Shown: positions 18,601 to 59,100 of the stretch, one piece after another
Numbering within the stretch: the first letter of the stretch is position 1
How the letters are laid out: the number at the start of each line of letters is the position of its first letter
Assembly: GCA_965202585.1 (NCBI GenBank)
Contig: OZ241834.1
Coordinates: forward strand, 9,858,001-9,922,000
Length of the DNA: 64,000 bases
Source of the DNA: Thalia democratica
Taxonomy: Eukaryota
Direction: 5' to 3'
Notes under the pieces: model-generated
Told to the model about the DNA's origin: nothing
Database searches by the model: none
The model's input: only the letters and a program-made list of their open reading frames with translations
Program-made: the position numbers and the translations under genes

Positions 18601-21600
18601 ATTGAATTAATTCAAAAACATTAAAAATATGCTGTTTAATGGTTATAAAGCTTTCCTAAGTTTTTAGCATAACAAATAAAAAATCAATTAAAAAGTTTTG
18701 TTTAATTAGTTCTATGAAGTCAAAAGAAAACTGTTTTGGTACCAAACTTGCATACTTAAGTGTTTTTTAATCTCATACGCATTATACTGTTTGCGGTTTT
18801 TTTTTTATTACTCTGATATATTTAACCACATATAGCTAGTAATTTACCAATTATGCATAAAATTTTAAAACGTGCAGACTAATTATACTAATTTGCAGAT
18901 TTTATGATGCACAAAGCATCGCAAGAAACGTCGAAAGTCACGTGCTACAACCCTGAAACAGGGGCCAAACAGCAGTTCAGCAAGTTTAACAACTACAACG
19001 ACGATTTGCAACACAGGAGAACACTCACTGAAAACTGTTAGTTCCTGCAACAATTTAAAAGCACATTATATCACAATGTCGCAACGTTAAATTCATTATC
19101 GGCATCAAAGCGAACTCGTGTGTTTACAAATAATGTCACGTAAACACAAACATTATTAAATTTCACAAACATTAAATTCACACCCTTATTGTTTTATGGC
19201 TTCAATTTAACACGCCTTGCGTTTCAAGTGCCGTGTAACGAGCACCTGACCGCACTAATTATTTTTGTAAAACTCTGAAACCCGACACTTTGTCAGTTAA
19301 CTTTGTTTACTGCTCATTACTAACAGGCGAAAGGGCGCCACTGAAACCACAAAGCGACTTCTACAAGAGGGAAATTCCCTTCGACTACCACCGGTCGGGG
19401 TCGTTCGACTTCAACATAATTCCTATCAACAAGGCAGTTTGCCCTAACCTGAATGGTGGTTCCCCGTCAGCGAGGGAAACAAAACCTCTGGCGCCGCTGC
19501 GCGGAAGCACAAGCTCCAAGTCGATCGTGGGAATAATGAAGTCCAAGTTCAGCAGGTTGTTAGAAATTAGTTGGAAGGATAAAATTGTTTAAGTTGTATA
19601 ATTTAATGATTTATTGTTTTAGATATGCAAATTGTTTTAGGAATATTGTTTATTTTGAAACTAATTTTACTATTTACCGGAAATTTATGATTGAAGTAAT
19701 TGCAAATTATGTTTTATGTTGAATTTGTACACGTATCATAAATTTTTAAAACTGTATACCATATATTTTTTACTTTTTTAAACTTTCAACGAAAGAAGTT
19801 CACCTAATATGTTGTAAGTTCCTAAATATTTTTTTTAGTTAAACAGTTTTATGTATTCTACCTTTTTTAGAACTATATCATGTAATTAATTTCAACCAAC
19901 ATTAACTTCAATTTTTACAACTGAATATATACTTATGGCAGTTAAAAAGCAAAGAATGTAAGCAAAAACCTACATTATTAAAGCCAAGTTAATCTTAATT
20001 CGAATTTTGTTCTTAGAGCATCTAAGGAAAAAACTAAAGACGCATCTAAAGAATTCACATCAAACAAGATTCCTGCTTCTAGTGGTTATGTCAAATCAAA
20101 GCCACCTATGGTTTCTAAAGTTAAGCTGACAAGCTGTAAGCCCTTACAGCAGGAAAAAATGTACCAGGAGGACAAAAGTTTGGTTGAAAATCGCGTAGCA
20201 GAAGGTAGTTGTTTGATCTCAAATTTAAATCAAAGCTTTAATACACACTTTCATTTTTTCAAACGTGTATATTAATCAAACTTTTAATATTACAAGCTAT
20301 GCTTTTAAATTACAATTGTTCTAGTTTGCTTGAAAACAGTGGTTTTAGTAACCTCCTTAACAATGAAAGCTGGATAATTGTAATAGTGTTTTAATCCTAA
20401 TTAAGATTATTTCAAAGGCACACAAGACGTGGAGGCACTGAGTGATGAGGGATTTGGTGAGAGCAGCACGATAGAGCGGATGGAGAAGGAGGGAACACTA
20501 ACACAGAACGCAGTTTCGCCCAAGAAGAAGCAAGATGAATATAAATACGTGGACAGATTATCGAGTTCTGCCCGGATAAATGAAGAAACTCCAGATAACA
20601 GTACGTAGAAAACTAATGTATTTCGTTGAGAATTAGTTTAATTAAAAAATTATGTTTTACTATTTAACAGATGAACGATGTAGCTGTAAACTATTTTTTT
20701 TTATTATAGCTAAATTCCATTTAAAAAAAAACTCTACAAAATGACATTCTAACAGGTAAACCGGCAAGAATAGTCAGTAAAGTGAAGGTTATAAAAAAGC
20801 AGTCCTTGTGTTCCAAACTATCGTCTCCTGCCAAACTGCAGCAAAAGCAAAACGGTAACAAAAGCATAGCTGTTATGAATCACAGAAAGATACCTTTGGT
20901 GGAAAGTCAACACTCGATTGACGCTTCGCGGCTGAATTTAATGCAGAAAGAAAAACAAGCAACTGTTTTGTCGAAAACAAAAGGAACCCAGCCTCTCTCG
21001 CCCAGGGGACTGATAAAGTAATAATTTGTTACTCAGTCAACAAAAATTAAAACATAATACTAAAAGTAAAACTATACTGAATAAAAAAATAAATCTAACT
21101 TTTACACTTCAAATATTTAAAAATATTAAAAAATGTTATACCGACTAAATGTTCTTTACCAAGCTAAATAAAATAATCCTAAAAAACTATTTAGACGAAT
21201 TGAATCGCCGTCTAAATCGATCAAACCGAAGCAGCAGCTCATCAGGCAATACAGCACACCGGTCAACGTTGCTGCTGATGACAAGAACAATAGAAACAGC
21301 AAAAAACCTCTTTTCATCTACAAGAGGCTCCCGTCCTCCTCTGCAATCCCCCTAAACAGCAACCAGCCGCTCAGGTCACCGAACTCACGACTTTCCTCGT
21401 CGCCTAGAACGCCAAACCAAGATTACAACGGGTTCCACGGCAGCCAGTACCGAAGGTTTTAAAATAAAAACTGAGTTTATTCTGTACATTGAGTTATTCT
21501 TAAGTTTTATGTTATCTTAAATTAAATAATTTAGAATATATGAAACACATAAATTTTTTTTATATTATATCTTATCTTACAAAATTCGGTGAAAAGTGCA

Positions 21601-21885: not shown

Positions 21886-21929
21886 TTTTAATTTGTTTTC
21901 TTTTTTTATTTACTTTTAATTTTTTGTGT

Positions 21930-21935
21930 AATAAA
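21930..21935 (+). terminator. Polyadenylation signal AATAAA ~45 nt after the stop
   Basis: gtAATAAAca context is conserved after the stop in B (~25625) and C (~47065), preceded by a U-rich tract. Confidence 0.45.
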
Positions 21936-22769
21936 CAATATAAGTACTAGTGAAGCTGGTTTTTTTAAATGTATAGCTGAACTATTTATACTTTTTATTT
22001 TCTCAATCATGCCTAAGATGTTTATATAACTTGCACTTTTTGAAAAGCGACTATTGGACTAATCTTTAATTACTACTATGACTAGCTCGCTCAATAACTG
22101 AAAAACCAAATACGAATATAAATATTAGTTTCACTTCATGTTGCTTAATACTTCAAGAAATTTCCGAAATTAGCATTTAAAAATTAAATTATTTTGATGG
22201 AAACTATATGTGGCATCATGAATAATAAAAGCGTATCCATATTTTCCTGAAGAATTAAATTTTAAAACAGATAAAGTAGAATTTAAACAAGAGAGATTTA
22301 ACATAGCTGCAACTTTACTGCAAGATGGAGGTTATTTGATTCTAAATATTTCACTTTCACAACTTGTGTTTTAACTTATTTATTATATTATATCAAAAAA
22401 CTAAAAACAAACATTTCACAGTCTATAACAAAATAATTTGCTCGAACAATACTGCTCCAGCCAGAAACAGTATTGGAAAAGTGCTTTGGGTTAGTTTGAT
22501 AGTATAGACTTACTATTTAAAACTTAGAAAGTTCTTTTCAATAAAAACTATCTGCTAGTTTTATATACTAGTAGTTTTCATTAGTCAGTTTTAAATAGTG
22601 GTAGAGTTTTAAACAGTATGATAATACAACAGATCAGTTGCAGCACTTGTTAAAGGAACTACCATTTTACTTGTCTGGGCTACATACCGTATTAATTTGA
22701 GGCAATAAATAAGAGCTCTTATTGTTGTAGCTAATGTAATTATGTTAACTATTAACTTTTTAGTTTTGT

Positions 22770-25455
22770 AGTGTGTTTTATTTAAATTAGTTCTAATTAT
22801 AACCATTTTTTTAATTGTGTAAAGTGGTTAATAAAAGTATACTTTTTTTTAATAAGTGTTTGACGTATGTAATACATTAATTAATTAAAAAAAAACAACT
22901 TTTTAATTATTTTATAGCTGTTATTAACTGTGAATTTTCGTTTCGTTTTTGTTTTTTTTGTTTGATTGAAGTATTTTTGATTAATTTTTTTTTTTTGTTA
23001 ATATAAACACTTAACATTAGTATGACTTAATTTTGCAATCAGAGTAACTTCTTCCGTATTAAAACAGTATAAATTATGAATTTTTTGTTTTTTTTAGTTT
23101 TAATTTATGACATAAACACTTTTCGTTTTTAAATAATGCGCGAACTTAAAGATTGAAAATAAAATAAACACTCAATGCGTAGCAAATAATTTGTAAATAA
23201 ATTAAATTTAAATTGTAAGTGCCAAATCAGCGACTACTAAAACTTTACTACCATTTTAGTTGATTTTAACTGTATGAATACACTTTAATCATTTAAATAC
23301 GAGGTTTGTTAGCATTAGGTATGTAAGTTAAAGCTATAGAAAAATTTTTGTCACATCATATACAAAAAAATCATTCAAATTTAAGCGACTAAAAACTGAA
23401 TTGCAAAACTACAGACCTTGGGTAAGGCGCCAATACCATTTTCAAAAACCATTTTTGACTCACATAATATAATTAGCCGATAAAAGATTACATAAAATAC
23501 TACTACACTAAAAGCTGCAACGTAATCTTTAATAAGTATATTTTTTTGAAACTTTAAAACTTTATTTCAAAGTAACATAAAGGCAAACTATGATTAATTT
23601 ATCTAACATAAAATTATTTTTTTTAACAACAATAAATCTTAAAGCTTAAGGGTAAATATGTATGATTTGTTAAACTTAGCATAAGTTTGAAAAAATAAGG
23701 TATTTATACAAAATTTATCATAAAAGCTCAAGTTATATTTAGTTAATTATCGTTTAACAACCATGGCTAATTTTTTATATTGATGTTTTTAAAACAAAAT
23801 TTTTTTATTTTTTATCTTAATTGATAAGAAGTAACCAACATGTTTGAAAATATAAAGATTATTTAATGTAATAAACATATATACTGTTATATTCTATTCA
23901 AGTTTTTCCTTCATAGATTGTTTTAAACTATTTTAAATGTCGTTTTACAAAGTTTTTTTTATATTTTTATTTATTAAGATAATCTAAAATTTTCATAACT
24001 ATTTACCCTTATAGTTATATTTAGATTTTTACTTAGTTTGAACTATTAAAACTTTAGTATTTTATTTATAAAGTTAAAAGAATAAAATACTTTAAGTTAT
24101 TATTTTATTTTCACAACAAGTTTGAAATTTCGATAATTTTATTATAAAAACTCTATTGATAATAGAAGCATCTATACAAACTAAAAAACCTAAAAGTAAA
24201 TGATTGAATATTAAAGTATAACAATGCTTCGAGTTAGATTAAAACTAATTTTTGTTTCTTTAAGACAGCTTTTATTAATACACATTAAATAAGGTTTTAG
24301 ATTAAGGTTTATATTCAAACTTTAGTTTGCTTAAAAAAACTAATATTTATTTAATTTTTAGGTTCAGCTATTAGCTTAATTTATAAAAAAAATTTCTTTT
24401 TAGATATGAAAATTCTAAATTTCGTATAAAAAAAAGTTCTTTTCTCAAACCAATAGAAGAATTTATGACTAGATGTTTCAGAAAGTTATTTTAGTTTTTA
24501 AAATCTCTAAAAAACATTACAGTTGCTTTAATTAACACTATGATTTAAACAATTACAAAATTTTATATAATTATAAAATTTTTTAAACAAACTGTTAATA
24601 AATAATAGAAGTTAAATTATGTTAGTACTTCTTTTACTTTCAAGGATTGTAAATTGTTATGCTAGTAGAAGATTGAAAAAGTTAGCACAAATTAAAATAA
24701 GCTGTTATTGTGTTTGTAATACATTTAAAACATTTATTTTAAACATTTTGTTTCAAACTTTGTTAAAAACATAGTGTTTTGCTTTAATTTTAAATTTTAA
24801 AGTATTAGTTTAAACAATTATATTTCAAAAACTTTTAAATTAAAACAGGTTTTAAGTACAAATATTTTTGTTTCGAAAACTTATCTAAAAGCAATTCTTT
24901 GTAGTATTAAATAGTAGTAATTTTTAGTATACAACAGAAAATATACTTTGCTTTTAGGATTTACAAAACATTAATTTTTTTAAAGATTAAAAAAAAAATT
25001 ATTTAAACTTAAGTTCATGCTGCTTATATTTAGTTTATATGACGTCGAACTTGCGTACTATCGAGTATATTAAAGATCTGATACATTATATACTTATATA
25101 AAAAACTATGGGTAGTTTCAGATTTCAACTACTTTTTTTTTTAAATAGCTTGAAATCATGCAACCATTAGCATATAAGAAGCATATCATATTTGCTGAAT
25201 CAGCAAAAAATACTTTTTTTCATACTATTTCTGATTAAAAAAAAAATTTGATTATACTTTTTTATTTTTGGGTAAGGTAGAATAGGGATAGTGATATAAG
25301 TATAAAAACAAATTTAAAAAATACTTAAGATTCTTTTTATTGACTAAGCAAATATGTAAACGACTTGCATAATTTTCAAGCTATTTAAAAAAATAGAGGA
25401 CATCTGAAGCCACCCAAAAACCTATAATTAACAACAGATACTTGCTTTTTTGATA
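22770..25455. other. Unique AT-rich spacer at the centre of the A/B inverted repeat
   Basis: No match to the unit seen and no ORF in the supplied track. Confidence 0.6.
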
Positions 25456-25671
25456 ACCATGCGAGCTAGTCACAGTAGTACTTTGATACTATATTAATTG
25501 TCGTTTTCTAAAAAGGCGCAAGTGATATAAACATCTAAGTTATAAAACTACTTGATGGAGATAATAAAAAGTTAAAATCTTTCTACTATACATAAAGAAA
25601 ATCAGCTTCACTAGTACTTATAATGTTTATTACGTAAAAATTAAGAAGAAAAAGACGGTAATAAATTAAAA

Positions 25672-28600
25672 TCAGGTAGACTTTTTTAATCGGGATATTC
25701 TTGTCGGTGGGGATAAATAGGATTGTTGCTTTTTTGTTTTGCTGCTGTCATTGTTTGTAGAAGGAACTTTTTTTGTTTGTTCTCCTGGCGACACAGATGA
25801 CCTGCGAAGCATGTTTAGTTAAATTGTTCGTTCTGTATTTTGTAACATGAATTTTAAGTTTCTTATTAAACACTTCTTAAAAAACAAAAGTTTAAATAAA
25901 TGAAAAACTGTACTTTATTTTAGAATAAATAAACTTTCTGTACGAAAAACTGAGAAAATAAGTTATAAAAGATTATTCATTCAGTTTGTTATAGCTTTTT
26001 TTATTTCAAACCTTCGGTACTGGCTGCCGTTGAACTCGTTGCAATCTTGGTTTGGCGTTCTAGGCGACGCAGAAAGTCGTGAGTTCGGTGACCTGAGCGG
26101 CTGGTTGCTGTTTAGGGGGATTGCAGAGGAGGACAGGAGCCTCTTGTAGGTGAAAAGAGGTTTTTTGCTGTTTCTATTGTTCTTGTCATCAGCAGCCAAA
26201 TTTACAGGTGTGCTGTATTGCCTGATGAGCTGTTGCTTCGGTTTGATCAATTTAGACGGCGATTCAATTCTTCTGAATAATTTTTTAGAGTTAGTTTGCT
26301 AAGCTTGGTTAAGAATATTTAAAAGAATTTTTGCATGAGTACTATATAAAAGATGGTAATTTTAAAAATTATTATATTTTAAGTATTTTGTTTATAATGT
26401 TGTTGACTGAATAATAAATTATTACTTTATCAGTCCCCTTGACGAGAGAGGCTGGATTCCTTTCGATTTCGATAAAACAGTTGCTTGTTTTTCTTTCTGC
26501 ATTAAATTCAGCCGCGAACCGTCAATTGAGTGTTGCCTTTCCACTAAAGGTACCTTCCTGTGATTCATAACAGCTATGTTTTTGTTTCCTTGTTGTTTTT
26601 GCTGCAGTTTGGCAGGAGACGACAGTTTGGAACACAGGGACTGCTTTTTTATAACCTTCACTTTGCTGACTTTTGTTGTCGGCTTACCTGTTTAAAATTT
26701 CATGTCGTAGTATTTTGTTCAATGGAGTTTAGCTAAAATAAAAAGAATCAGTTTACAGCTATCTCCGAAAACTAATTCTCAACGAAAACTATTAATTTCT
26801 ACGTACTGTTATCTGGAGTTTCTTCATTTTTCGGTGTAGAACTCGATAATCCGTCCACGTATTTATATTCATCTTGCTTCTTCTTGGGCGAAACTGCGTT
26901 CTGTGTGAGTGTTCCGTCCTTCTCCATCCGCTCTATCGTGCTGCTCTCACCGAATCCCTCATCACTCAGTGCTTCTACGTCTTTTGTGCCTTTGAAATAA
27001 TTTTGATTAGTTTTAAAACACTATCACAATTATTCAGCTGATATTTTTAAGTAGAATACAAAAATCACTGATTTAAATACTAAACAAACTAGAACAGTTG
27101 TAATTTGAAAGCGTAACTTGTACTATCAAAAGTATATTGATATTAAACTTGAAAAAAAATTGTGTGTATAACAATTTTTTTTCATTACTCAGGTTTACCA
27201 ATTTGAGATCAAAAAACTTACCTTCTGCTACGCGATTTTCAATCAAAATTTTGTCTTCCTGGTACAGTTTTTTCTGCTGTAAGGGCTTACAGCTTGTCAG
27301 CTTTACTTTAGAACCCATAGGAGACTTTGACTTAACATAACCACTAGAAACAGGAACCTTTTTTGATGTAAACTCTTTAGATGCGTCTTTAGTTTTTTCC
27401 TTAGATGCTCTAAGAAAACGTTTTCAAATTAAGATTAACTTTGTTTTTAATAAAACATATTTTTGCTTAAATTTTTATACTTTTAATTACTCTTAGTAAA
27501 CATTCAGTTTCTAATGTTTATTTTAATTTTTATTATAATTAACTGCAGTATAGAGTTTTAAAAATGATAAAATAAACCGTTTATTTTTCAAAAAAATATG
27601 TTTTTTAGTGACTTACAGTATATTAGGTAAACTGATTTGTTAAAAGTTTGAAAAAGTAAAAACTAATTATATATAGTTTAAAAATTTATATTAACAAGTA
27701 CAAATTTAACTAACAAAATGATTTGACCTTATTGTTTATATAAACAGATTTTCGAAAATTAACAACTTAATTAAATAAACAAACTCTAAACAATTTTATT
27801 TTTCCAAAACAATCAATCATTAATTTATACAACTGAAACAAATTTATTCTTCCAACTAATTCTAACAACCTGCTAAACTTGGACTTCATTATTCCCACGA
27901 TCGACTTGGAGCTTGTGCTTCCGCGCAGTGGCGCCTGAGGTTTCGGTTTTCTCGAAGGGGAACCACCATTCAGGTTAGGGCACACCGCCTTGTTGATGGG
28001 GATTATGTTGAAGTCGAACGACCCCGACCGGTGGTAGTCGAAGGGGATTTCCCTCTTGTAGAAGTCACTTTGTGGTTTCAGCGGCGCCCTTTCGCCTGTT
28101 AGTAATGAGCGGTAAATAAAATTAACTGCAAAAGTGTCGGGTTTCAGAGCTTTTAAAAAACAGTTAGTTTTGTCAGGTGCTCGTTACACGGCACTTGAAA
28201 CGCAAGGCGTGCTAAATTGAAGCCATAAAACATTAAGGGTGTGAATTTAATGTTTGTGAAATTTAATATTGTTTGTGTTTACGAGACAGCATTAGTAAAA
28301 CAAACGAGCGATAAGTTGTAAACAAGTTCGCTTTGATGCCGATAATGAATTTAACGCTGCGACATTATGATATAATGTGCTTTCAAATTGTTGCAGGAAC
28401 TTACAGTTTTCGGCGAGTGTTCTCCTGTTTTTCAAATCGTCGTTGTAGTTGTCAAACTTGCTGAACTGCTGCTTGGCCCCTGTTTCAGGGTTGTAGCACG
28501 TGACTTTGGACGTTCCTTGCGATGCTTTGTGCATCATAAACTCTGCAAATTAATATTGTTAGTCTGCATGTTTTTAAACTTTTAACTTATAATTAAGTAG

Positions 28601-43700: not shown

Positions 43701-46700
43701 GATTCGTGCTGTGAAGTCATGCTAACGAAGGGAAAGTTCACTGATTGGAATTTTTGTTGATACACAATTTTGTCACGACTTGAGTCGTTCAAATTGGCTA
43801 CTTAGAAGTTGTCTGTATATTTGCAACGTATTATGCTGGCTTTAAATGTATCATACAAATTTTCTAAAGTTTTTTTAAATGGTGTTTGAAATAAATAAAG
43901 TACAATTTATATATAACTCTTGATTTATCTGTAAAAACACAGACTTTGAAAAAAGTTTCTAAATTAAAAGTAAAAATCTTATTTTCAAGTTGACTGAAAT
44001 AGATTAATCATTTCTAATGAATTTAAAATTTAGCAAAAAAAAATGTTTAAAAGAATTATTAGCTGTACATATTTAAATGTAATCACGTGCTCTTAATGTT
44101 ATTTTAACTACAATTTTATTAACAAAAGGACATTCACAATACAAAAATATATATTGGCAGGTGCATGGAAGTATTCATAATTCCAATACTCATTGTGTTA
44201 AGGCTAATGTCAAAATTTTTAACATTCGTTTGAAATTTACTCAGATGTTCTATTATGACGTAATTGTGGAATTACGTATAGCTTCTAGTTAGGTTTTTTT
44301 TTTTGTTTAATTTAGCTTTCACGAAGATAATGGGATTTGTTTTATTTGACAAATTGTAACCGGATTTGGTTGTTCTAACTTTAAAGTCGAATGGAAAGAA
44401 GTATTTTGATTAGTTGACTACTAACTAGCTTGTAAAGTAGTTTTATATAATTTAGTTTTACTAACTTTTTTTAATGTATTAGTACCATTTGTTTCCCATA
44501 ACATATTCAGAACTATAATAGAAGTCAAATATTGCAGTATAACATAAACAAGTTTGTCACACGGCACACTTCAACAATCTCAACCGTTCACATCTTTCTT
44601 CTAAATTAAAGCGAAACGAAACTCAATTCAAAAACGTCAATCACTCCAGAGTCCGAGACGTTAATAACATGGTCATTTTCGCCTCTGTAGGAAATGTGAC
44701 CCTGTCACTTTTTATTTGCTTATATTCGCTTAATTGCATTTACTTCGCTTCATCCCGCTGCTCATACGCAGTTTTCTACTTCAATTAATTTTTATTAAAA
44801 TTTTCAATTCAACATAACATCGCTTAAATACTGGTTAATTATTTGATTGCACATTTAGAAAGAAAATATCTAAACCGAGTAGATCAATTAATTTTAATTT
44901 GTTTGAAACAATTTTAAAATAAAGTACCGTTTATCGTTTAAATTTGTTTAAAAAATCAAACACCTAACATCGTTTCTTGTTCACAATCCCCTTTTTTTTT
45001 GCTCACATGCAGAGGCTTAGCGCGTTTTCTAAGCACTAATAAGTTAGCGCACAAAAACAAACTTATCACAAAAACTCTCGGGTTAGAACGTTTACCTTAC
45101 GACTAGCTGTCAGGCACGCCAGATGGCAAATAAGCAGTTTGTGTTATTGTTAGACCACTAAATTCTGCCTTTAATCTCAGCACCAGAGAATTCAAGCGAT
45201 TTGTTTAGTGCTTCCGCGACACCTCTGCTTTTCTCAGTCGCCTTTTTGTTTGCCAGTTTACACAAGATGTGAATAAAGCGACGGGGCTTTGAATAAACAA
45301 TGAATGATAAAATGCGTTGTAAGGCGTTTTTAAGACTCTTGTTTTTGTTCCTACGCGTGCAGTGAAGCTGCCGTGAAAAAAACAATAAAAAAAACATTTA
45401 AATAGTATTGAATAAAATATCGCAACATTGTTTAAAATATGTTTGAAATGTTTGTGACGTGAAACTTGTTTTGTTGGTTTAAGTTTTATGAGCAGCAGTT
45501 ATTGTTTTTTAGTGATTAGAACTTTATAAATAAAAGAAATTCACAAATAAATGCAGACTTTGAATATAATACTACCTTAAATACTTGCATTAAAATAAGT
45601 ATTAACTTCAAGAACTAATTTTATATATCTTATACAATTTTAACTCACATACCTAGTGCTCAAAAACATGGTATTTTATTATTAACTGTGTGATAACAGG
45701 TTTAAAAACAAATATGCGCTGATTTTGCAGTTACAAATTAAATTTAGTATACTACAAGCATGAGCAACGCTTCAAGTTTTTAATTTATTTTCATATATTG
45801 AATTATCACGCTATTTACAAACAAAAAATATTTGTGTCACACAACTAAAACAAAAAAAGGAACGACAGTTTCACTATTAATACTATTTGAAAAAAGAAAA
45901 ACTTAATCTGATAAAAATCTTATTTGATATATATATCAAGTGCTTATATTAGTAAAAAATTTATTTGATAGAAAAAGTACCTGAACCAAAGAATTTAAAC
46001 AAAAAACGAATTTTAAGAAAATTATTAACAATTCTAAAATAAAAGAAGTTATTTTGTTTAATAAATTAATGTTTTACATACGGTAAGTTTTTATTTTATT
46101 AAAAATGTTTTCTTAATTTACACAATTAAAATGATATAACAAAAAATGTCATAACTAAAACTATTTAAATAAATTAAACTCCAAAATTAATAAGTTGATT
46201 GTTACCATTATTAAGAATAGCGACAATAACAAGAGCTCTTTTTTATAGCCTCGAAATAATACGGTCTGTAGCCCAGACAATTAACATTTCCTTTCACAAA
46301 AGCTGCAACTGACCTGTTAGAATATTATACTATATAAAACTGACTAATGAAAACCACTAGTATTTTAAACTAATAAAAAGCTTTCATTGTAAATAACCTT
46401 TTAAGTTTTGTATAGTCAGTATCAAACTAACCCAAAGCACTTTTCCAACACTGTTTGTGGTTGGAGCAGTATGGTTCCATTCATAGCAAATTGTTTTGTC
46501 ATAAACTGTGAAATGTTTGTTTTTAGTTTTTTTGTACAATATATTTAATAAGTTTAAATAGATCATAAAAGAAGTTTGTTAAAAGATACGTTGTGGAAAG
46601 CGAAATGTTTAAATAATATTTAAATAAGTGAAAGCGAAATATTTAAAATCAAATAACCTCTATCTCACAATAAAGTTGTTGCCATGTTGAATCTTTCTTG

Positions 46701-47097
46701 CTTAAGGTCTGTTTAATCTGTTTTCAAGCTTATTTCTTCAGGAAAACATGGATACAGTTTTTATTATTAGTAATGCCGCCTGTAGTTTCCATCAATAATT
46801 TAATTTTAAAATGCTAATTTGGCGAAACTCTTGAAAAATTAAGCAACATGAAATGAATATATTATTTATATTGGTGTTAGGTTTTCAGTAATAATGCGAG
46901 CTAGTCACAGTAGTACTTTGAGGTTGTTTTAATTTCGCTCTGGAAAAAAAAGTACATAGGGTATAAACATTTTAGTTGCAAAACTACATAATGGAGAAAA
47001 TAAAATTATAAAGTTATTCAACTATATATTCAGAAAACCAGCTTCAGTAGTAGTACTTATATTGTTTATTACACAAAAAAAAAAAAACAAGTTAAAA

Positions 47098-50000
47098 TCA
47101 GGTATACTTTTTTAATCGGGTTATTCTTGTCGGTGGGGATAAATAAGATTGTTGCTTTTTCGTTTTGCTGCTGTCATTGTATGTAGAATGAATTTTCTTG
47201 GTTTGTTCTCCTGGCGACACAGATGACCTGCGAAGCATGTTTAGTTAAACATTTCGTTTTGTATTCTGTAATATGAATTTTTAGTTTCTTTATAAACACT
47301 TCATAAAACAAAATACCTCTCAATACAACCAAGATTTATATAAACTACAAATTGTATTTTATTTTGTAGTGTATAAAGAATTTTGACTTTCGAATGAAAA
47401 ATTAAGAAATATCAGTCATACAATATTATTCATTCAGTTTGTTATGGTTTTCATATTAAAAACCTTCGATACTGGCTGCCATGGAATTCATTGTAATCTT
47501 GGTTTGGCGTTCTAGGCGACGAGGAAAGTCGTGAGTTCGGTGACCTGAGCGGCTGGTTGCTGTTTAGGGGGATTGCAGAGGAGGACGGCAGCCTCTTGTA
47601 GATGAAAAGAGGTTTTTTGCTGTTTCTATTGTTCTTGTCATCGGCAGCCACGTTGACCGGTGTGCTATATTGCCTGATGAGCTGCTGCTTCGGTTTGATC
47701 GATTTAGACGGCGATTCAGTTCTTGTGAATAGTTTTTTAGAGTTAGTTTGCTAAGTTTGGTAAAGAATATTTAAAGAATATTTGCAGAGTAATATGTAAA
47801 AGATAGATAATTTTTTAATTAGTATATTTTTAGTATTGTGTTCAATTTTTTTTTACTGAATAACAAATTATTACTTTATCATTCCCCTGGTCGAGTGAGG
47901 CTGGGTTACTTTTGTTTTCGATAAAACAGTCGCTTGTTTTTCCTTCTGTATTGAAATCAGCCGCGAAGCGTCAATCGAGTGTTGACTTTCCACCAAAGGT
48001 ATCTTTCTGTGATTCATAACAGCTATGTTTTTGTTACCGTTTTGCTTTTGCTGCAGTTTGGCAGGAGACGACAGTTTGGAACACAGGGACTGCTTTTTTA
48101 TAACCTTTACTTTGCTGACTTTTGTTGCCGGTTTACCTGTTAGAATGTCATTTTGTAGAGTTTTTTTAAATGGAATTTAGCTATAATAAAAAAAAATAGT
48201 TTACAGCTACATCATTCATCTGTTAAATAGTTAAACATAATTTTTTAATTAAACTAATTCTCAACGAAATACATTAGTTTTCTACACACTGTTATCTGGA
48301 GTTTCTTCATTTATCCGGGCAGAACTCGATAATCCGTTCACGTATTTATCTTCATCTTGCTTCTTCTTGGGCGAAACTGCGTTCTGTGTGAGTGTTCCGT
48401 CCTTCTCCATCCGCTCTATCGTGCTGCTCTCACCGAATCCTTCATCACTCAGCGCCTCCACGTCTTGTGTCGCTTTGAAATAATTATATTTAGTTTTAAA
48501 ACACTATCACAATTATTCAGCTGACATTTTTAAGGAGGTTACTAAAACCACTGTTTTTAAAACAAACTAGAACAATTGTAATTTAAAAGCATAACTTGTA
48601 ATATTTAAATTTTTATTAATATACACATTTGAAAAAATGAAAGTGTGTATTAAAGCTTTGATTTAAATTTGAGATCAAACAACTTACCTTCTGCTACGCG
48701 ATTTTCAACCAAACTTTTGTCCTCCTGGTACATTTTTTCCTGCTGTAAAGGCTTACAGCTTGTCAGCTTAACTTTAGAACCCATAGGTGGCTTTGATTTG
48801 ACATAACCACTAGAAGCAGGAATCTTGTTTGATGTGAATTCTTTAGATGCGTCTTTAGTTTTTTCCTTAGATGCTCTAAGAATAAAATTCGAATTAAGAT
48901 TAACTTGGCTTTAATAATGTAGGTTTTTGCTTACATTTTTTGCTTTTTAACTGCCATATGTATATATTCAGTTGTAAAAATTGAAGTTAATGTTGGTTGA
49001 AATTAATAACATTACATAGTTCTAAAAAAGGTAGAATACATAAAACTGTTAAACTAAAAATAAAATTTAGGAACTTACAGCATATTAGGTGAACTTCTTT
49101 CGTTGAAAGTTTAAAAAAGTAAAAAAATATATAGTATACAGTTTTAAAAATTTATGATAACAAGTACAAATTCAACATAAAACATAATTTGCAATTACTT
49201 CAATCGTAAACTTCCGGAAAATAGTAAATTTAGTTTCAAAATAAACAATATTCCTAAAAGAATTTGCATGTCTAAAACAATTAATCATTAATTTATACAA
49301 CTGAAGCAAATTTATTCTTCCAACTAATTCTAACAACCTGCTGAACTTGGACTTCATTATTCCAACGATGGACTTGGAGCTGGTGCTTCCGCGCAGCGGC
49401 GCCAGAGGTTTCGGTTTTATCGAAGGGGAACAACCTTTCAGGTTGGGGCACACCGCTTTGTTGATGGGAATTATGTTGAAGTCGAACGAGCCCGACCGGT
49501 GGTAGTCGAAGGGGATTTCCCTCTTGTAGAAGTCGCTTTGTGGTTTCAGCGGCGCCCTTTCGCCTGTTAGTAATGAGTGGTAAATAAAATTAACTTCCAA
49601 AGTGTCGGGCTTCAGAGCTTTAAAAAACAGTTAGTGCGGTCAGGCGCTCGTTACACGGCACTTGAAACGCAAGGCGTGTTAAATTGAAGCCATAAAACAA
49701 TAAGGGTGTGAATTTAATGTTTGTGAAATTCAATAATGTTTGTGTTTAAGTGACAACATTTGTAAAACAAACGAGCGAGTAATTGTAAACAAATTCGCTT
49801 TGATGCCGATAATGAATTTAACAGTGCTGCATTGTGATAAAATGTGTTTTCAAAGTGTTGCAGGAACTCACAGTTTTCAGCAAGTGTTATCCTGTGTTGC
49901 AAATTGTCGTTGTAGTTGTTAAACTTGCTGAACTGCTGCTTGGCCCCTGTTTCAGGGTTGTAGCACGTGACTGTGGACGTTTCTTGCGATGCTTTGTGCA

Positions 50001-53000
50001 TCATAAACTCTGTAAATTAGTATTGTTAGTCCGCAAGTTTTTATACTTTATGCATAATTGATAAGTTACTATTTTTATGTGATTAAATATACCAGAGTAA
50101 TAAAAAATAAACCGCAAACAGTATAATGCGTATGTGATTAAAAAACACTTAAGTATGCAAGTTTGGTACCAAAACAGTTTCCATTTGACTTCATAAAACT
50201 ATTTAAACAAAAATTCTAAGTATATTTTTCTATTTGTTATGCAAAAAACCTAAGAAAGTTTTAAAGCCATTTAACAGCATATTTTAAATGTTTTTGGAAT
50301 TAATTCAATTCTACCACTATTATATTCCAAATTTTATATGTCAAGTTTAAAGCACTCAAACATTTTTTAGAAAGTTTATGAAAACACTCAAATACCATTT
50401 TTGAAGTTCATGAATGAAAAGCTTTGAAAAAATGTGAATAAAACTTTATATATAGCTCTGCAGCTTGTAATTTTCTTATTTTTAGTATTTTTGGGTGAAA
50501 TATTAAACCAATGAATTGTTTGTTGGTTTGTAACAAACCATGCAATTTTGCAGCGTAAAAACAACTTTTTGATAAAATATTTAAAACCAAATTTTAAAAA
50601 GTGATATAATTATATTTTAATAATAAAAACAAACTTTGCTGGGGACAAACGAAATTGTCTTCACTACAGTTGTCGTCCTCGACTGCAAAATTATCGAATT
50701 CTTGCATCTGTGAAAATTTCACGGTTAGTTTAAGGTTTTTTGAAAAAAAAAAGTTAAATCAGTTTTGTTATTTTTTCAAAACGCCTTTTTATTATGTAAG
50801 TGTTTTTTTTAATTCTTGCAACTATGTCAATAAGTCTATGAGCTAGAAATAATTTGTACTTTGTGATTTTTTATTACAAACAGGTTTAAACTATAAACCG
50901 AAAAAAAAATATATGTAATATAACCAGTTCATTTAATTTAACTCAAAACAGAAAAACTTTTTTGGTTTAAAATTGTGTTCATAGAAAATAACTAACCATG
51001 CTATCTTGTTGCAAAAACATCCCAACTGGCAAAGACTCTGTTTTTTGATTTCCTCTCTGCATCATGTTGTTTAGACACAAATTAATTTCCTCCAGTGTCG
51101 CGTAATTTTTGAATGCATCCATGTCACTTGAATGAAAATAACTTTGGTCTGAAATTTTATATATATATATTTTTGCATACGTTATTTAAATTTATTTTTA
51201 CATTTTTAAAATAAATGTTACAGTAAATAAACGAGCGTTTTTAGTTACTTTAGGGTTAAGCTATACCTGTATAAGTAGTTTAAATAATTCATAACTTAGG
51301 TTAAACTACTCATACTTTATAATTTTTTGATTTTTGTTGTTTAAATACCATAAAAGTTTAACTTAATTACATAAATCAGTTAATCTGATCTGTTTGCTTT
51401 GTGTATCGTAAAACAGTGTAAAGTTTTGATGAATGAGAAAATATAAATCTTGAAAAGTCAGCTTCAATGATTCAAGCCCTTGAAAAGTACTTTGTGTGTA
51501 ATAAATTAATTTGTGTCACCTTTAAAGATTATGTAAGGTGCTATTAGCTGCCTTGTATTATAACATTAAAGGAATACTTTCTATCTGAGTAACTTTTAGT
51601 TTACATATTTGAGCATTATAAGTTTTGTTCAACTAATGGTTTGAACCATTAAATTAGTTTTATTATAATGTTTACATAATTGTATTGTGTTGTTTTTATT
51701 AAAGTTGTTTAACTTTTCATTGAACTTATTCACCATTATAAACGTTGCGTAGTAATTTTAGCCTATTGATTATTGATAGAAACTAACCTAGCAATCTTAT
51801 CGCTTCTTCTTGATCGTTACATGTCTCATCACTATTCTCCTCAGTACAGTATCTGTTTTTGTAGTAATTTTTAGTTTATTTTAAATAAACTACAATTAGT
51901 CTTTTTACTATTCAAAATGATATTAAAATAAAATAATACTGACAAGCTTTTAATTTTTTACTTGAGTTTTTTGTTGGATTTTAAAATTTTTGTTTTAAAG
52001 CGGTTATAATCTACTATTTGAGTTATTCAACTTAAAAACAAAACAAAACTTTACTTACACTTTATCATCCTTGTTTTGATGATTTTCGTTTTGTTGGTAA
52101 CCTTCTCCAACAAAATAATTATTTGCATAGAAAGAATTTCTGTTTGAAACATCATCTCCTTCCACTACAACGTTCACACATCTCTTTTGCGTTTCCGCCT
52201 TGACAGGTTTCTCACCTCCGTTTGGGTACATATATATAAATATACATATACGTAGATTAAACTTTTAAGTATCATCTATCATTATACTACTTAAAATGAC
52301 TTATTAGACTTTAGTTTTCGGCATTAACGGAAAATTATTCCCTACTAATATTCAAAAAGATTTGTAAAAAACAAAAAAAAATTCTACAAAAAGATTTGCA
52401 AAATTAAAACAAAACAATTTAGTTTCAGGCAGAAAAATGATACCACCAAAAACGAATCGTCATTAAGGGATTAAGATCTGGTAAACAAAGATTAACAACT
52501 GTAATACTAAGTAAAATACAGTTGGTTTATTTATAAAAACTGTCACACGCTTTTTTAAGTGTTTGCAAATAATCATTAGGCTTTAATGACGTTATCTAGT
52601 AAAAATTTTGACTAAAATCACATAATCTTATCTAATCGTTTACTTAAAAATAACAGCCTCACGAAATCGTAGGAACATGGCTTTTACTTATTTGTAAGTT
52701 ATCTGAACTTAGCGGATACTTTTAAAACTGAAATACAAGTAAAAAAACAATTAATAAAAAAGTAGTACTTTAAGTAAATTTTTAACCAGTAGTTTTCAAA
52801 AATGAAACTCTAATTTTCCTCTTTTCCGATCTTTTAAACAAATTTATATTTAAGTTTCTAGATACAGTTTGATTACTCACTAACTGATGAATACTTAATA
52901 AAGCCTGATTCATTTCAGTTTTCGTAATATTTGCTTATTCAAAAGTGTTTATAATCACTTGTAACGTTGTCGATTTCCGTCGAAGACCAGCCTCGATTTT

Positions 53001-56000
53001 TGAACCTCGAGTTTTGCTGGCTTTTGATTGGACGTTCTTCTGTTTCGTGAAAAACGTCTTCACTTTCCGATTCGCTCTCCACCTGCTTCTTGATGTTTGT
53101 CTCCACATCTTCATACACCTTCACTCCCATCTTCGGCTTCATCTCGTCGATTTTCCGCTGTTCGCAGTTCATTTTCCCGCTGAAGTCGGAATATTTCATG
53201 TCTTCTTCCTCCGTGGTTTTGTCTTCCGACGGTTTCCCTTCAGTTTTTTGATTTTTTTCTGCTGGTTTAGTGGAAAGTAGGAGTGAGAGGAAAGTAGCCA
53301 GTTTTGTGAAAAGCTGTTCGATTAGCGGGTCTGGCATACCTACAATAAATCAAAAAAAATGTTATGTTATGTTTTTTTTCTTATAATTGTAGTGGGGTAG
53401 TATAAATGGTTAACATTTTTTAAGCAGAATCATGTATTTCATGTTAAAACATTTAGTTTAATGTTTTAAAGGTAGAAGATATGTAAAAAAAAATTCGAAT
53501 TATTTTTAAGTAGCTATAGCGTTTACGTAATACTTTGCTAATTACAATTTAAAATCATTTATGATAAGTATCAAATTTTGACTACCGAAGTAATTTAACA
53601 CTTTTAAATGTCAAAATTGCATAAAATATTTAGTTCTAAAGTTACCTTGTTCTCTTATTACAACGTCTTTTAATTTTTTGCGCCTTAAGATGGAAACTAG
53701 GGTGAAAAAAATGACATAACGAGTGAGGAATTCCACACAAAAAGGATATATTGAAAGTCGAGAAATGAAAATTACCTTAAGTGCAAGGTAAAGTTGGATA
53801 TTCGTTACGTGCGATTATTTAGTATCTGAAACTGAAAAAGTAGAAGAAAAGATAAACTTTTGGTGATTTGCTTCATGCGTGTTTTTCTTGCGAGTTGGAT
53901 CAAAAGCGAGGCTATTTGCCAGGAAAATGCTTTTAACCTTGTCGGCACGTCTTTTGAATCCTATACAGCAGCTTGCTTTGTTTGAACAAAACAGAAAAAC
54001 TCCTGTGTGACGCTTGTATCTCGTGTACATATCAACCTTTTTGTTCGGTTTCGACATTCGGAAATTTTCAAATATAATAACCTGTTTGTTCAGCAAGTTG
54101 TTTCCAGTTCGCCGAAGTTTCGCTTCTTTTAACTTCCTTGTTTTCTTGATTAAGCTCACTCGAAAATTTTATTCTTCCTTTTTTAGTGAAAACTTTATTT
54201 AATGTTAAACATACAATTGTTTAATTAGACAGCTTTTAGGTTTTATTTAACTGTTAATTTTTATTTTAATAATAAATATAATTATATGTTTAATAAATTA
54301 TAAAGTTTTTGACCCATATTTCTAAAAACATATTATTTGATTTTTTTTTTTTACGTGACTAACTTTAGTAACTTAATAAAATAAACTTAATTTTTGGTAC
54401 TAAAGCTCACATGATGTTATTGTACAAATTATGTAGATAGTTACAATAATTAAAGTATAATATGTTTGATAAAAATTTCTAACTTTTTGTGTTTAGTTTG
54501 TTTTCGTTGGTAAGTTCTTCCACTTGGTTTCTCAACATATCACATTCATCAAATAGTTCATCCCTTTCTTTTTCAACAAGCATCTTTTCTGTTTCTACCT
54601 AAATTACATTGGAATTTATATTCATAATACTCCTTTATTTTACAATTAAATAGTGTTTTAATCCTTCAAAAAAATATTTATAATCATATACGTATACATG
54701 TTTAAAGAGTTCTTTCTAAAGCATTTCAACTATTCGTAAATGAAACATTGAAATGAGTTTAATCGCCCTAATGTCAAGTTAATATTAAAATTACGTTTCT
54801 ATTTGATTATTTACATCATAATTTTAGTAATACAACCCGTTTAACTGCAATTAAGAAAAAAACATTTGTTTCAAACGCCTCCCCCTGACAATATATTAAT
54901 TTAATATAATTATTTTGTACAAATGATTTTGTGTGTACTAAGTTATCGCCTTTTATATCAACCAAATGAGTTTAATCTTGTTAATGAGTTTTTTATATTT
55001 TAACTATGTTTGATGTTTTGTTTATGTTTATTTGGTGTTGAATATAAATGTTTTTATTTTCATTATTCTCGTTCTTGTGTCTTGATTAAGTGGCTCAGGT
55101 TTTGATGCCTGAGTCTAACTTTGCACAATAAAGAATATAATAATAATAAAAACAAGTTGGTTTGATGATGTTTAAGCCACTTTTCGATTTATTGTAACAA
55201 CTCAGCGTTTTATACTATATTAAGTATAAAACTAGAGAATTTGTTTAAAAAACATCTAAACATTTTAGTCTTGTTTCTTGTTGATCAAAAGTTCGCTAAC
55301 ATACTTTAAAAATTAATAAAAACTGTTATAAATGTATTGATATTACTTACTTTTTCGTTTTTAACATTCAGGTTTTCAACGAGCTTGACCAGATTTTTGT
55401 TTTCATCTTCAACTCGCTGAATCTTTTCAACTAAACGAGCGTAACTGGAGTGTACCATGTCCGCATTCTGATAAAAACAACAATTCAGTAAAAACTCCTT
55501 TTGTTAAAGCATTTTAAAGTCTATCTAAATAGACAAACGTTGAATTTTTTCAAAAATTTAAAACAAGTTATTAGTGCTTTACTTATTTTAGCTTTATAAT
55601 AACTTCTTATAAATGTAAAATTAGTTTTAGGCTTTGAACTTGCTATGTTTGACTATTTTTTGTTAAATTACCTAATTAAGCAGTTTACATATTTTAAAAA
55701 CACGTTGTTTTGGTTTTGATAAATTACACTGAAATTTATATTATGAATAATTTTGTTGTCAGCTATAATATTCAACAAATTAGAACTTGCTGTTAAGATT
55801 CAACAACTTTTTTCTATTTAAATGAGCTTTATTTCAAAATATTTATTAAAACAAAATTCAAAAAGCATTTGAAAATTGCTATAGACGTTCCTAATTGTAT
55901 ATAGCCTGAGCTAATGACAAATTCAAAAATATAAGGTTTTTTATTTAATGTTCACACGTTACAGATAACTACCGTCTCACAAGACTCAAAACAACAAATT

Positions 56001-56198
56001 ACAAGCATATAATAAGCGGGCAGATTACTACTCTTCTCAAAATTGCAGTGCAACTTGACACTGGCAATTATACCTTAAAGATTCTCATTGCCACCCACAA
56101 AATGAACAAAAACTCACGCTCCTTGAAGTTCTCGAGGAAGTAGATTCGCTATAAAGTGAATTGATGCCATACCGACTCTGCGATGATTTCGAAGTCAT
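47098..56198 (-). CDS. Copy C of the same 16-exon gene (ORF intact if three shifted acceptors are used)
   Basis: Exons 5'->3': 56198-56118, 55467-55351, 54598-54484, 54192-54082, 53339-52959, 52215-52059, 51852-51788, 51148-50997, 50707-50635, 50009-49872, 49563-49338, 48875-48688, 48472-48290, 48136-47875, 47721-47464, 47227-47098. The A-type AG is missing at exons 4, 6 and 15, but an in-frame AG lies 6, 15 and 3 nt downstream. Confidence 0.78.
51371..51478 (-). CDS. Candidate exon 7b, copy C
   Basis: 108 nt, AG..GTaatt, open reading frame. Confidence 0.6.
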
Positions 56199-59100
56199 AA
56201 CAGACTATTTGCTTGTTTGCTTTGTTTTGTTGTTTTATTGTTAATACCTGTGAAAAGAAAAAATAAATTTGTCTAAGTCACCAGATTAATTATTCAATAT
56301 TTGCGTCACTCTTGTAATGCGTATGTGTATGGTTAAACCTTTTTATTTGTAAATAATGATTTTATATGTCTTTTGTAATGACGATGTACCATGTAAAAAC
56401 AAAATGTTTTAAATAAGTTTGGTTATTTTTTGTTTGTGTTGAGATAAACAACACGATGCATTTTAATTTTTAAAGAGTTTTTTGTTTACTTATACGAAAT
56501 CTAGTATAAAAACCATTGTTGCAGAAATATGTAAACGCAAATAAAGTTTATTAAACTCTTATTTTCTAAAACCACAAGCTAATCTTAAAAGTAAACTTTT
56601 TCTATTACTAAAACTTCTAAAAACTATTATAATAAGTCTATAAGTATTTTAAAAACTTGAAACTTTTTATTTTAAAGAGCTTACTTCAATCAAACTTAAA
56701 ACATTATTGGTTTATTGCTTTAAATTAAACATCAAACTTTATAGAAATCGTTTTCAATTATCCAATTAAATAATTTGTGTATATTACCAAACAGTATTAA
56801 GAATTCAATTTTTATTTCTCTAGTTTACCTAATTGTTGCAATACTTTAAAATTTAATATTATGTTTGACCTAATTTATAGTTTTAATTTATAGTTCATAA
56901 GTAAAATTTAAATAAAAGTTTAAATTTGTTGTGATTTATTTTGTTTAGACAAAAACCAACAAAAAAATTGTTTGCTTTAGAAACTAATTTGCGAAATCTA
57001 CAAAACCTTTCTAAACTATTTAGTTATATATCTGATATAGTTAATTTTTAATAAAAATGTATTAAAAAGTACTTTAACTTTATTTCAATGATAAACTCAT
57101 GCAGTCAAAGTTTAAAAAAAAATTAAAGACTATTAGTGCTTAAAATATACTTAAACAGTTGTTATATAATTTCAAACAAAATTAACTTTAAGCTTTCAAA
57201 GAAAAACTTACACAAAACTATGCTAAGATGTTTTTTTATGTATCCGATTTGTTTTTAAACAACTAATAGTTATATTAGTCCATCATTAAAAAAAGTTCAA
57301 ATTTCAACAGGTTTTACTTTTACTAAACTATTTTCAGTGCGAATTCTAAAAAAATATTTTTATATCTATGTAACGTATATCTGTTACTCATTTTTCCTTA
57401 ACCTAAAGTCAAAAAACTTATACTATTTGTGTTACATTTAAAAATTCTAAAATACACATTCTTTAACCTACTTCAAAGTTGTCTGTATGGTGAATTTGAA
57501 ATATTTTTAACTGATTAAAATAAAATATCTTAATCAAAACTTCAGTTTAATCCTTTTGATACTTGCTAGACAAAAATACCAGTAAGTTATACCAACTGTT
57601 TCACTTGAGATTATAAAAGACTCAACAGTTCACCTATTTCCTTATGAATTATTCAAAACCGTTTCAGCGGCCAAGCATCGGAAAGAGTTGCATCGTCCAG
57701 CTGCCGTTGTGACGTCATAATGCCTCCATTTTTGTCGTCGGCGGCAGGTGGGGGCCGGGCTAGTCAACAATCGAGTAGCAATTCGATTGTGACATCACAG
57801 TGAGCCGTTCACTGACATTATCGCTTATTTCCTTGCAACTTGTTGCTACTAGAAGTTTTTTTTTACCGCGTTGTACAGTAATTTTCAATTAGTATAAAAA
57901 TACAGTACATTTTTCTTTCCAAACTTGTTTTAAACACTTTTTTGTTTTATTGTAGTATATTTAAAAATACTGTTTCTAAATTAATACTAGATTTTCACAA
58001 AAGTCTAACTTCTTTTACGCTTTATTTTACAAAATTATATTAAATTTTTATTTTTAACAAACAATTTAAAACATTTTAAAATTGAACTTCTACAAAAAAT
58101 TTTAAATAAACTATCAATGATGCAAACGAAAATATTTAGATTGTATTTGTAGTAGAGCAACAATTTTGTAGTAGCTTGTAACAGTTGTCAAAAAATATGA
58201 TTGATGTGTTTTAAAAACTAGTTCTGTACTTAAATTAGTTTTTCTTTGATCTTTTGTTCACGGCAATATATGCTTAGCTTATTTAGAGTAAATACAAAAA
58301 CTAACAATTTTTCTAAAAAATTCTAAAGTAATTCAATAATTTTAAAATAAAAAGTAAATACAGAATAAATAAACACATAAAAATTGAAATAATAGTTATG
58401 GTTTTTATTAATTCATATGCAGCTGTAAAAACTTATACATAATAGATTTTTTTCTCTCAAAACAAAGCTTGAAATTTTGTCACGATAAACCAAACCACTA
58501 CATTGCAGAAGTCATGATGTTAATTACGCATTTTTTATCAAAAAGTTTTTCATACATATTTCTGTAGGTTTTACACTGAAAAACCAACTAAAAAATACTT
58601 CATACGCCGTCTTATGAATATTTAAAAGTGAATTACTTGAACTTAGACTATAAATGTATACTTTCGTGCGTAAAATGACCAACATCTTTTGTATACATTA
58701 TTTTATAGCTATATTTTTTAACTCACGTGACTTTTTTATGATATTTTTCTATAGCTTGTCAACAATTGATTCAGCCATTCTTAAATACACCTAAGGCTAT
58801 AAAACAGCACTAGATTTTTGTTAATAATATACAAAGAAATTAGAAAATAATCATAAAAAATCAACAATTTGAAATTATGCTTTATTTAAGTATGTGTTGT
58901 TTCAATTCATTAAGAAAAATTAAACGTACTAAAAAATTATTTTAAATTGTGTATTACTTTTTAAAGTATTGATTTTCAGATGCTGTCTAAATATCATAGA
59001 AATGTTTACTTATGTCATCACAACAACTCTTTTAACTAATAAGAAACATAGTAAGTTTTCAAAATCCTTTTCTTTTATTTAAAAATTATTAATTTAATAT

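Follow-up and report, generated by a model that had tools for sequence, protein, structure and literature searches.

How can one copy of a triplicated gene resemble its inverted neighbour over one kilobase and its tandem neighbour over another? This question is raised by a stretch of 64,000 nucleotides from the genome of Thalia democratica (NCBI GenBank assembly GCA_965202585.1, contig OZ241834.1, positions 9,858,001 to 9,922,000 of the forward strand), referred to throughout as the window and numbered from its first letter. The window is AT-rich (27% G+C), has zero runs of N and holds three copies of a unit of about 21 kb within 62 kb, here called A, B and C, whose identity ranges from 80 to 97% by region and each of which carries an intact open reading frame (ORF) of the same gene. 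An original prediction, made from the letters alone, had described copy C as a patchwork of A-like and B-like tracts left by gene conversion between inverted and tandem copies. The analysis reported here confirms discrete tracts, although with only three sequences the mosaic is not assignable to C in particular, and identifies interlocus (non-allelic) gene conversion among the three paralogues, in several events of different age, as the very probable cause. The copies were defined by self-BLAST and aligned three ways with MAFFT; their positions are as follows.

1732-23332, plus strand: copy A, the full repeat unit (self-BLAST), with its coding sequence running from the ATG at 12619 to the stop at 21462
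25459-45631, minus strand: copy B, inverted relative to A (self-BLAST), ORF intact
45639-64000, minus strand: copy C, in tandem with B (self-BLAST), ORF intact, the unit being cut by the window end

A Mosaic of Discrete Tracts

The variable sites of the three-way alignment comprise 1236 that B and C share, 799 at which A agrees with C and 717 at which A agrees with B, and their order along the alignment is far from random. When maximal-segment scores were compared with those of 2000 permutations of site order in a GENECONV-type test (null maxima 12.9-15.4), one A/C segment (A 20924-19626 = C 47968-49268) reached a score of 111 with 177 of its 233 variable sites shared (null maximum 12.9), and one B/C segment (B 35040-36162 = C 56459-57590) reached 88.6 with 177 of 202 sites shared; two further B/C segments, B 32832-33922 and B 31961-32308, scored 35.8 and 19.1, respectively. 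The three site classes are likewise heterogeneous over 37 windows of the alignment (chi2 = 660.7, df 72, p = 5e-96), and segmentation with a four-state hidden Markov model (HMM) gave the same map at finer grain. The resulting tracts and patches are listed below with the methods that support them; exon and intron numbers follow the gene model given further on.

19621-20924, plus strand: A side of the A/C tract, covering intron 11 (from 65 nt past its donor), exons 12-13, introns 12-13 and most of exon 14 (permutation, HMM)
47968-49273, minus strand: C side of the A/C tract (permutation, alignment, HMM)
C 48072-48124 = A 20768-20820, minus strand: B/C-like island of 53 bp within the A/C tract, in exon 14 (HMM, alignment)
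C 48494-48529 = A 20361-20396, minus strand: second B/C-like island within the A/C tract, 36 bp (HMM, alignment)
B 35040-36162 = C 56459-57590 (A 11194-12370), minus strand: B/C tract 1, non-coding, upstream of the ATG exon (permutation, distances)
B 31957-33928 = C 53357-55323, minus strand: B/C tract 2, introns 2-4 with exons 3-4, ending at the large-exon acceptor (permutation, alignment, HMM)
A 18696-18822 = C 50212-50086, plus strand in A: small A/C-close tract in intron 9 (20 of 25-26 variable sites, p <= 0.0005; HMM)
A 15710-15814 = B 31492-31393, plus strand in A: tentative A/B-close patch of 105 bp in intron 5 (22 of 28 sites shared, permutation p ~0.005)
C 47741-47794 = B 26289-26344, minus strand: B/C-like patch with shared indels in intron 14 (alignment, HMM)
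C 47398-47448, minus strand: B/C-like patch just past the stop codon (alignment, HMM)

Mosaic patches accordingly touch all three pairs of copies and not only those that include C, and B/C tract 2 contains a mixed gap at B 32520-32729. The coordinates given in the original prediction lie within about 60 bp of the borders obtained from the data, and its choice of the close pair was right in each case, but its description of these stretches as nearly identical was too strong. Over A 19560-20950, compared with C 49333-47942, A and C are 95.0% identical (A and B 83.3%, B and C 84.3%), and the likeness is interrupted by the two B/C-like islands; over B 33900-31940, B and C are 94.8% identical (A and B 83.9%, A and C 84.0%); over B 36200-35030, they are 97.0% identical (A and B 80.7%, A and C 79.8%). 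None of these values is the 99-100% that near identity would imply. The indels claimed to be shared within tracts are indeed shared: in every tract, the majority of indel events separate the close pair from the outlier copy (18 of 24 events in the A/C window are private to B). Intron 13, said to be almost letter-for-letter the same in A and C and shorter in B, differs between A and C at only 2 of 118 sites, and B is without 35 of its bases.

Conflicting Trees Along the Gene

Since three sequences have one unrooted tree, asking whether a single topology fits all parts of the gene is empty without an outgroup. Short marine-metagenome contigs, reached through the protein fragments from the searches described further on, were used for this purpose, two of them (L001-L002) covering the large exon with its flanks and seven (L003-L009) covering exon 14 with its flanks; they are 74-84% identical to A, B and C and were taken as other species or distant copies on the strength of that distance.

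Over intron 13 and exon 14, the rooted alignment holds 13 shared-derived sites for A and C, one for B and C and five for A and B; the maximum-likelihood tree groups A with C (support 97/96), and the approximately unbiased test rejects the grouping of B with C (p 0.0055) and that of A with B (p 0.037). Over intron 4, rooted with L001, informative sites number 18 for B and C against 3 and 2 for the other pairs, the tree groups B with C (98/97), and both alternatives are rejected (p ~0.025). The proposition set beforehand, that one topology serves all windows, hence fails: A and C are sisters in intron 13 and exon 14, B and C in intron 4. Outgroup trees of the large exon, the last exon and intron 5, including its A/B-close patch, resolve no pair.

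The outgroup contigs show a pattern of their own. Three of them (L007, L008 and L009) match one another without a difference from intron 13 to intron 14, exon 14 included. L007 and L008 fall to 97% identity in the last exon, and the parts of L007 and L009 that precede exon 14 cannot be aligned with the window copies at all; the metagenome relatives, to judge by these contigs, also seem to be mosaics.

Divergence and Base Composition of the Tracts

Pairwise divergence (d, with the pair as suffix) shows how far the close pair departs from the other two. In tract introns, the close pair stands at 0.017-0.08 and the other pairs at 0.16-0.25: intron 11, which is RNA-supported, has a dAC of 0.057 against a dAB of 0.252 and a dBC of 0.238; intron 13 has a dAC of 0.017 against 0.186 and 0.203; introns 2-4 have a dBC of 0.045-0.062 against 0.16-0.21 for the other pairs; and the non-coding B/C tract upstream of the ATG exon has a dBC of 0.044 against 0.18. 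All pairs lie between 0.12 and 0.19 in introns 8-9, where the three copies diverge in a star-like manner. Over introns 11-13, the branches leading to A and C have lengths of about 0.033 and 0.014 per site, which is 2-4 times less than the approximately 0.06 of introns 8-9, so that the pair is truly closer and B is not simply farther away. As the likeness is strongest in introns, selection on the protein is not its cause.

GC bias frequently accompanies gene conversion, without being obligatory. The tracts show no GC enrichment, intron GC is not consistently higher in the converted pair, and the strong and weak bases at shared sites (79/57, 50/74 and 78/68) show no excess of strong bases.

Probable Mechanism and Direction of Exchange

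By reasoning, two inverted copies that underwent a reciprocal crossover would trade their inner segments, with inversion of the DNA that separates them, but would not become alike, and an unequal crossover between tandem copies would alter copy number. Non-reciprocal copying alone makes two extant copies alike over an internal patch, which leads to interlocus gene conversion. Such conversion would proceed by homology-directed repair, in which one copy serves as template and a stretch of another is overwritten without crossover, and the exchange would be non-reciprocal. At least four events of different age are required by the map: one or two A-C events between inverted copies, spanning about 1.3 kb (introns 11-13 and exons 12-14); two or more B-C events between tandem copies, one stretch of about 1.1 kb lying 5' of the ATG exon and another of about 2 kb covering introns 2-4; and short later patches within the A/C tract. 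Several events are needed because the partners differ, the tract ages differ (dBC 0.044-0.14, dAC 0.017-0.08) and B/C-like islands lie inside the A/C tract. The repeated, kilobase-scale exchange between inverted A and C and between tandem B and C that had been proposed is thus upheld by the discreteness of the tracts, their inclusion of introns and the conflicting outgroup topologies.

Tract ends may tend toward conserved blocks because repair needs homology there; they adjoin exon 11, the end of exon 14, the ATG exon and a 2-kb conserved non-coding block, all places at which border calls are least precise. The variable half of the large exon would either never have been converted or have had its conversions purged by selection. 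Unconstrained divergence reaches 0.25-0.32 in some introns against 0.12-0.19 in the star-like regions, which suggests, as far as such distances can tell, that the star-like regions, too, were at one time homogenised, following the triplication. With respect to direction, the distance of B to the 3' tract (0.19-0.25), set beside that between A and B in the flanks (0.23-0.27) and between C and B in the flanks (0.15-0.17; few introns), weakly suggests that A was the donor and C the recipient of this tract.

Several observations weigh against conversion as set out here. Tracts of interlocus conversion mostly measure 50 to several hundred bp and most events occur above 80% identity (PMC3924818), and the 1.1-2 kb tracts of this locus exceed most experimental estimates; the long tracts may be composites of several events. 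Present identity in the flanking introns, 75-85%, is low for efficient conversion, so that the events either must date far back or must have had conserved exons as anchors. Most tracts do not reveal which copy was donor and which recipient, and, as further family members occur in metagenomes, an outside donor is possible. The likeness of B and C in the 3' flank is nearly all a matter of A-private changes (27, against 2 shared-derived sites), unlike simple clock-like conversion. To these may be added the absence of GC bias noted above and the length of the available read contigs, none of which bridges a tract.

Alternative Explanations

The copies could have diverged without any exchange, at rates that differ by region and by copy through selection or local mutation rate. 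Formally, every site shared by two of three sequences is also a private change of the third, and this is how parts of the 3' end look: 9-11 B-private changes against 2-4 shared-derived A/C changes in the last exon, besides the A-private excess of the 3' flank. The main tracts behave otherwise, in that the rooted counts (13 A/C against 1 and 5; 18 B/C against 3 and 2) are of derived states shared by the close pair, each grouping has 97-98% support with its alternatives rejected, and the branches of the close pair are 2-4 times shorter than in neighbouring introns, the effect as a whole being strongest in introns; rate differences without exchange are consequently the least likely of the explanations considered. 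Exchange with members of the family that lie beyond the window, for instance a fourth copy, would turn the tracts into by-products of unseen donors. Marine metagenomes contain no fewer than five additional sequence types for exon 14 with its flanks. One of these, L004, is sister to A, B and C together, and its last exon is 96% identical to that of A. The array may also extend past the window, since the window end truncates C. An unseen donor would nevertheless make one copy odd and would not bring two copies of the window to 95-99% identity, and the metagenome contigs reach at most 84% overall identity to any of A, B and C, which makes this explanation very unlikely.

An assembly artefact, in which reads from several copies or haplotypes were joined into a chimeric C, or mis-mapped A and B reads were used to polish it, is also quite unlikely, even though it has evidence in its favour. 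The read evidence consists of Logan contigs of public runs, 150-460 bases long, so the long-range structure of C is that of the assembly. Of the 31-mers sampled from C 46900-52899, only about half occur in the three public runs; paralogues can be seen to cross-map, several of the alternative letters recorded on C being the state of A or B; and the X1 contig at 50471-50651 equals copy B at all four listed variant sites. Against such an error, the tracts are 95-97% identical and carry private substitutions and indels, where pasting or polishing would give about 100%; the X1 and X3 contigs (47772-47952, one mismatch) pass over the 3' end of the A/C tract and combine A-like sites with B-like indels; and mosaic patches occur in all three pairs rather than in C alone. 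The X2 contig (48853-49312) extends some 20-40 nt beyond the 5' border of the same tract. Interlocus gene conversion among A, B and C accordingly remains the preferred explanation.

The Large Exon

B/C tract 2 had been said to stop abruptly at the acceptor of exon 5, and it does: the border, with its shared deletions, falls within about 20 nt of A 15268. The first half of this exon, the largest of the gene, was likewise correctly described as differing among all three copies, its first approximately 190 nt carrying all three site classes and its second half being conserved. In the first 64 codons, synonymous divergence (dS) is 0.29-0.62 and non-synonymous divergence (dN) about 0.10, against 0.14-0.16 and 0.04-0.05 in the rest of the gene. 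With L001 added, the exon yields four near-equal branches (9, 9, 13 and 11 private sites), a star-like pattern in which L001 is no more distant from A, B and C than these are from one another over the variable segment. The suggestion that exon 5 escaped homogenisation therefore holds in part. The first half is, by these estimates, the deepest part of the coding sequence and is consistent with such an escape, but no positive selection among A, B and C was seen in the segment (dN/dS 0.16-0.34).

A comparison of two metagenome contigs from different samples bears on the same segment. Between L001:860-1389 and L002:1-537 (equivalent to A 15448-15991), there are 10 differences, all within 86 nt of the large exon and nine of them in codons whose amino acid changes, and there are none over the other approximately 440 aligned bases, intron included. 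The first half of the exon might be a recognition-like or diversity-selected segment that is actively kept from homogenisation while its surroundings convert; given a dN/dS of only 0.16-0.34 among A, B and C, this idea is rather doubtful.

The 3' End of the Gene

Exon 15 had been called A-like and exon 16 B-like in copy C. The former description stands at the level of the protein, C agreeing with A at seven positions where B differs, but the changes are mainly private to B (by the counts given above) and the outgroup tree resolves no pair. The latter is not supported, as the putative exon 16 would lie past the inferred stop codon and one RNA run has no depth there. What is B/C-like, with shared indels, is intron 14 together with the first 100 nt past the stop. 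The 3' flank that A and C were predicted to share and B to lack was found at A 21903-23232 = C 47097-45717, with 71% identity.

Two differences among the copies were observed at this end. In copy C, the last exon is without its AG acceptor (47700-47724, compared with A 21193-21195), CAC standing in place of TAG or CAG, and an in-frame AG lies 3 nt downstream. The stop codons also differ, the protein of A ending in ...RRF, that of C in ...RRFLI and that of B in ...RRFEIKKAITN.

Gene Model and Predicted Product

The gene model is anchored by the splice joints of RNA contigs from a marine metatranscriptome placed on C at >=97% identity. Four joints are canonical GT..AG on the minus strand, with splice dinucleotides conserved in A, B and C; a fifth (48470/48687) reads CG..TA with one unplaced letter, the conserved donor and acceptor lying 1-2 bases away. 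The remaining exons were chained from conserved AG and GT sites by ORF length, with frames open in all three copies. The RNA contig has copy-A states at three variant sites and thus supports the exon model rather than expression of C in particular. The model comprises 17 coding exons and 900 codons, with an ORF that is intact in A, B and C.

A 12619-12701, plus strand: exon 1 (gene model)
A 12757-12859, plus strand: exon 1b (frame and conservation only)
A 13357-13473, plus strand: exon 2 (gene model)
A 13930-14044, plus strand: exon 3 (gene model)
A 14348-14458, plus strand: exon 4 (gene model)
A 15268-15638, plus strand; B 31937-31564 and C 53339-52966, minus strand: exon 5, the large exon (gene model, alignment)
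A 16034-16088, plus strand: exon 6a (frame and conservation only)
A 16424-16580, plus strand: exon 6 (gene model)
A 16976-17040, plus strand: exon 7 (gene model)
A 17755-17906, plus strand: exon 8 (gene model)
A 18204-18276, plus strand: exon 9 (gene model)
A 18899-19036, plus strand: exon 10 (gene model)
A 19297-19555, plus strand: exon 11 (gene model)
A 20017-20207, plus strand: exon 12 (gene model)
A 20418-20600, plus strand: exon 13 (gene model)
A 20756-21017, plus strand: exon 14 (gene model)
A 21195-21462, plus strand: exon 15 (gene model)

For exon 11, an upstream acceptor at A 19243, which would add 18 codons in A and B, was dropped on account of a 1-nt deletion that shifts the frame of C (49593-49646); the acceptor at A 19297 was chosen because it is the only one that keeps all three copies open. 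Over the whole gene, pairwise dS is 0.165-0.176 and dN/dS 0.26-0.32 for every pair, and all three ORFs are under purifying selection.

Similarity searches produced little beyond marine metagenomes. Pfam returned nothing above threshold for ten exon ORFs, and two ESM Atlas look-ups gave scores of <=0.70 and no family. Among 1.84 billion representatives, HMMER matched the large exon to two marine-metagenome fragments and nothing else, and a word-indexed search with exon 14 found only five marine fragments. No match to a phage collection was obtained by BLAST, and an exact scan of Joint Genome Institute metagenome contigs with a conserved exon-13 35-mer returned 0 matches. Judged by these searches, the gene is an orphan, whose predicted product has a coiled-coil-like N-terminal part and a long low-complexity remainder. 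Words of the window also match marine metagenomes and a metatranscriptome.

Locus Architecture

Copies A and B stand tail to tail, with about 2.1 kb of unique DNA between them (23333-25458). The homology of B ends at 25459, so that B is without the last approximately 1.2 kb of the 3' flank. The ends of A coincide with the junction of B and C (45631/45639), A 1732 corresponding to B 45631 and A 23285-23332 to 45685-45639; A is exactly one tandem period in inverted orientation. Over long aligned blocks, A and B are 80.8-85.1% identical, with 74% over one block of 217 bp.

Larger indels separate A from both other copies. Intron 2 is longer by 297 bases in B and C (B 33955-33203, C 55350-54599) than in A (13474-13929), intron 6 contains a further large indel of 192 bases, and two more, of 242 and 198 bases, precede the ATG exon. 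The 2-kb conserved block (A 9113-11184 = B 38240-36172 = C 59665-57600) is 94-97% identical in all three copies (d 0.047-0.060) and without a long ORF, and the DNA adjoining it on both sides is 80-88% identical; constraint on a regulatory or untranslated region would explain this, as would homogenisation among all three copies. Smaller blocks of this kind lie at A 7341-7941 and A 6202-6481.

Comparison With Known Systems and Implications

Interlocus conversion between duplicated genes leads to partial concerted evolution. The locus resembles described cases of it in its discrete close tracts, which include introns, in the conflicting trees of neighbouring segments, and in the presence of the copies on one chromosome, within 30 kb and at more than 80% identity (PMC3924818). 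The tract sizes and this level of identity lie inside the published range for such conversion, and the three intact ORFs under purifying selection also accord with its usual behaviour. The persistence of a diverged first half of the large exon beside a converted tract has a parallel in the copepod GOT1 paralogues with their islands of divergence (PMC3728101). It departs from typical interlocus conversion in its longer tracts (1.1-2 kb), in the lack of GC bias, in that an inverted and a direct partner have both exchanged with the same copy, and in that the gene is taxonomically restricted and without a known domain.

Arm-to-arm gene conversion occurs in large palindromes, for example those of primate sex chromosomes, and the original prediction had appealed to this kind of homogenisation. 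The inverted, tail-to-tail pair of A and B with its short spacer of about 2.1 kb is similar in form, but the exchange at this locus involves the outer copy C, and A and B show at most one 105-bp patch of extra likeness. As the A and B arms are only 82-85% alike, they are not a homogenised palindrome, and the analogy is a loose one. Inverted triplications of the duplication-triplication/inverted-duplication (DUP-TRP/INV-DUP) type are a possible origin of such a layout and are offered as a lead only; three copies of one unit, one of them inverted, and the coincidence of the ends of A with the junction of B and C are shared features, whereas the copies here are old (dS ~0.17).

In summary, the locus is a clear but ordinary, textbook case of interlocus gene conversion, a phenomenon already known. 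Its practical consequences are that trees and divergence dates drawn from the three paralogues depend on the kilobase chosen and that paralogue-specific read mapping will fail inside the tracts. It provides a clean, outgroup-tested example in which one copy shares tracts with both an inverted and a direct partner, and in which a tail-to-tail pair does not behave as a self-homogenising palindrome. One lead alone has room to grow, namely the exon segment whose divergence persists next to converted DNA, in the window as well as in metagenomic relatives.

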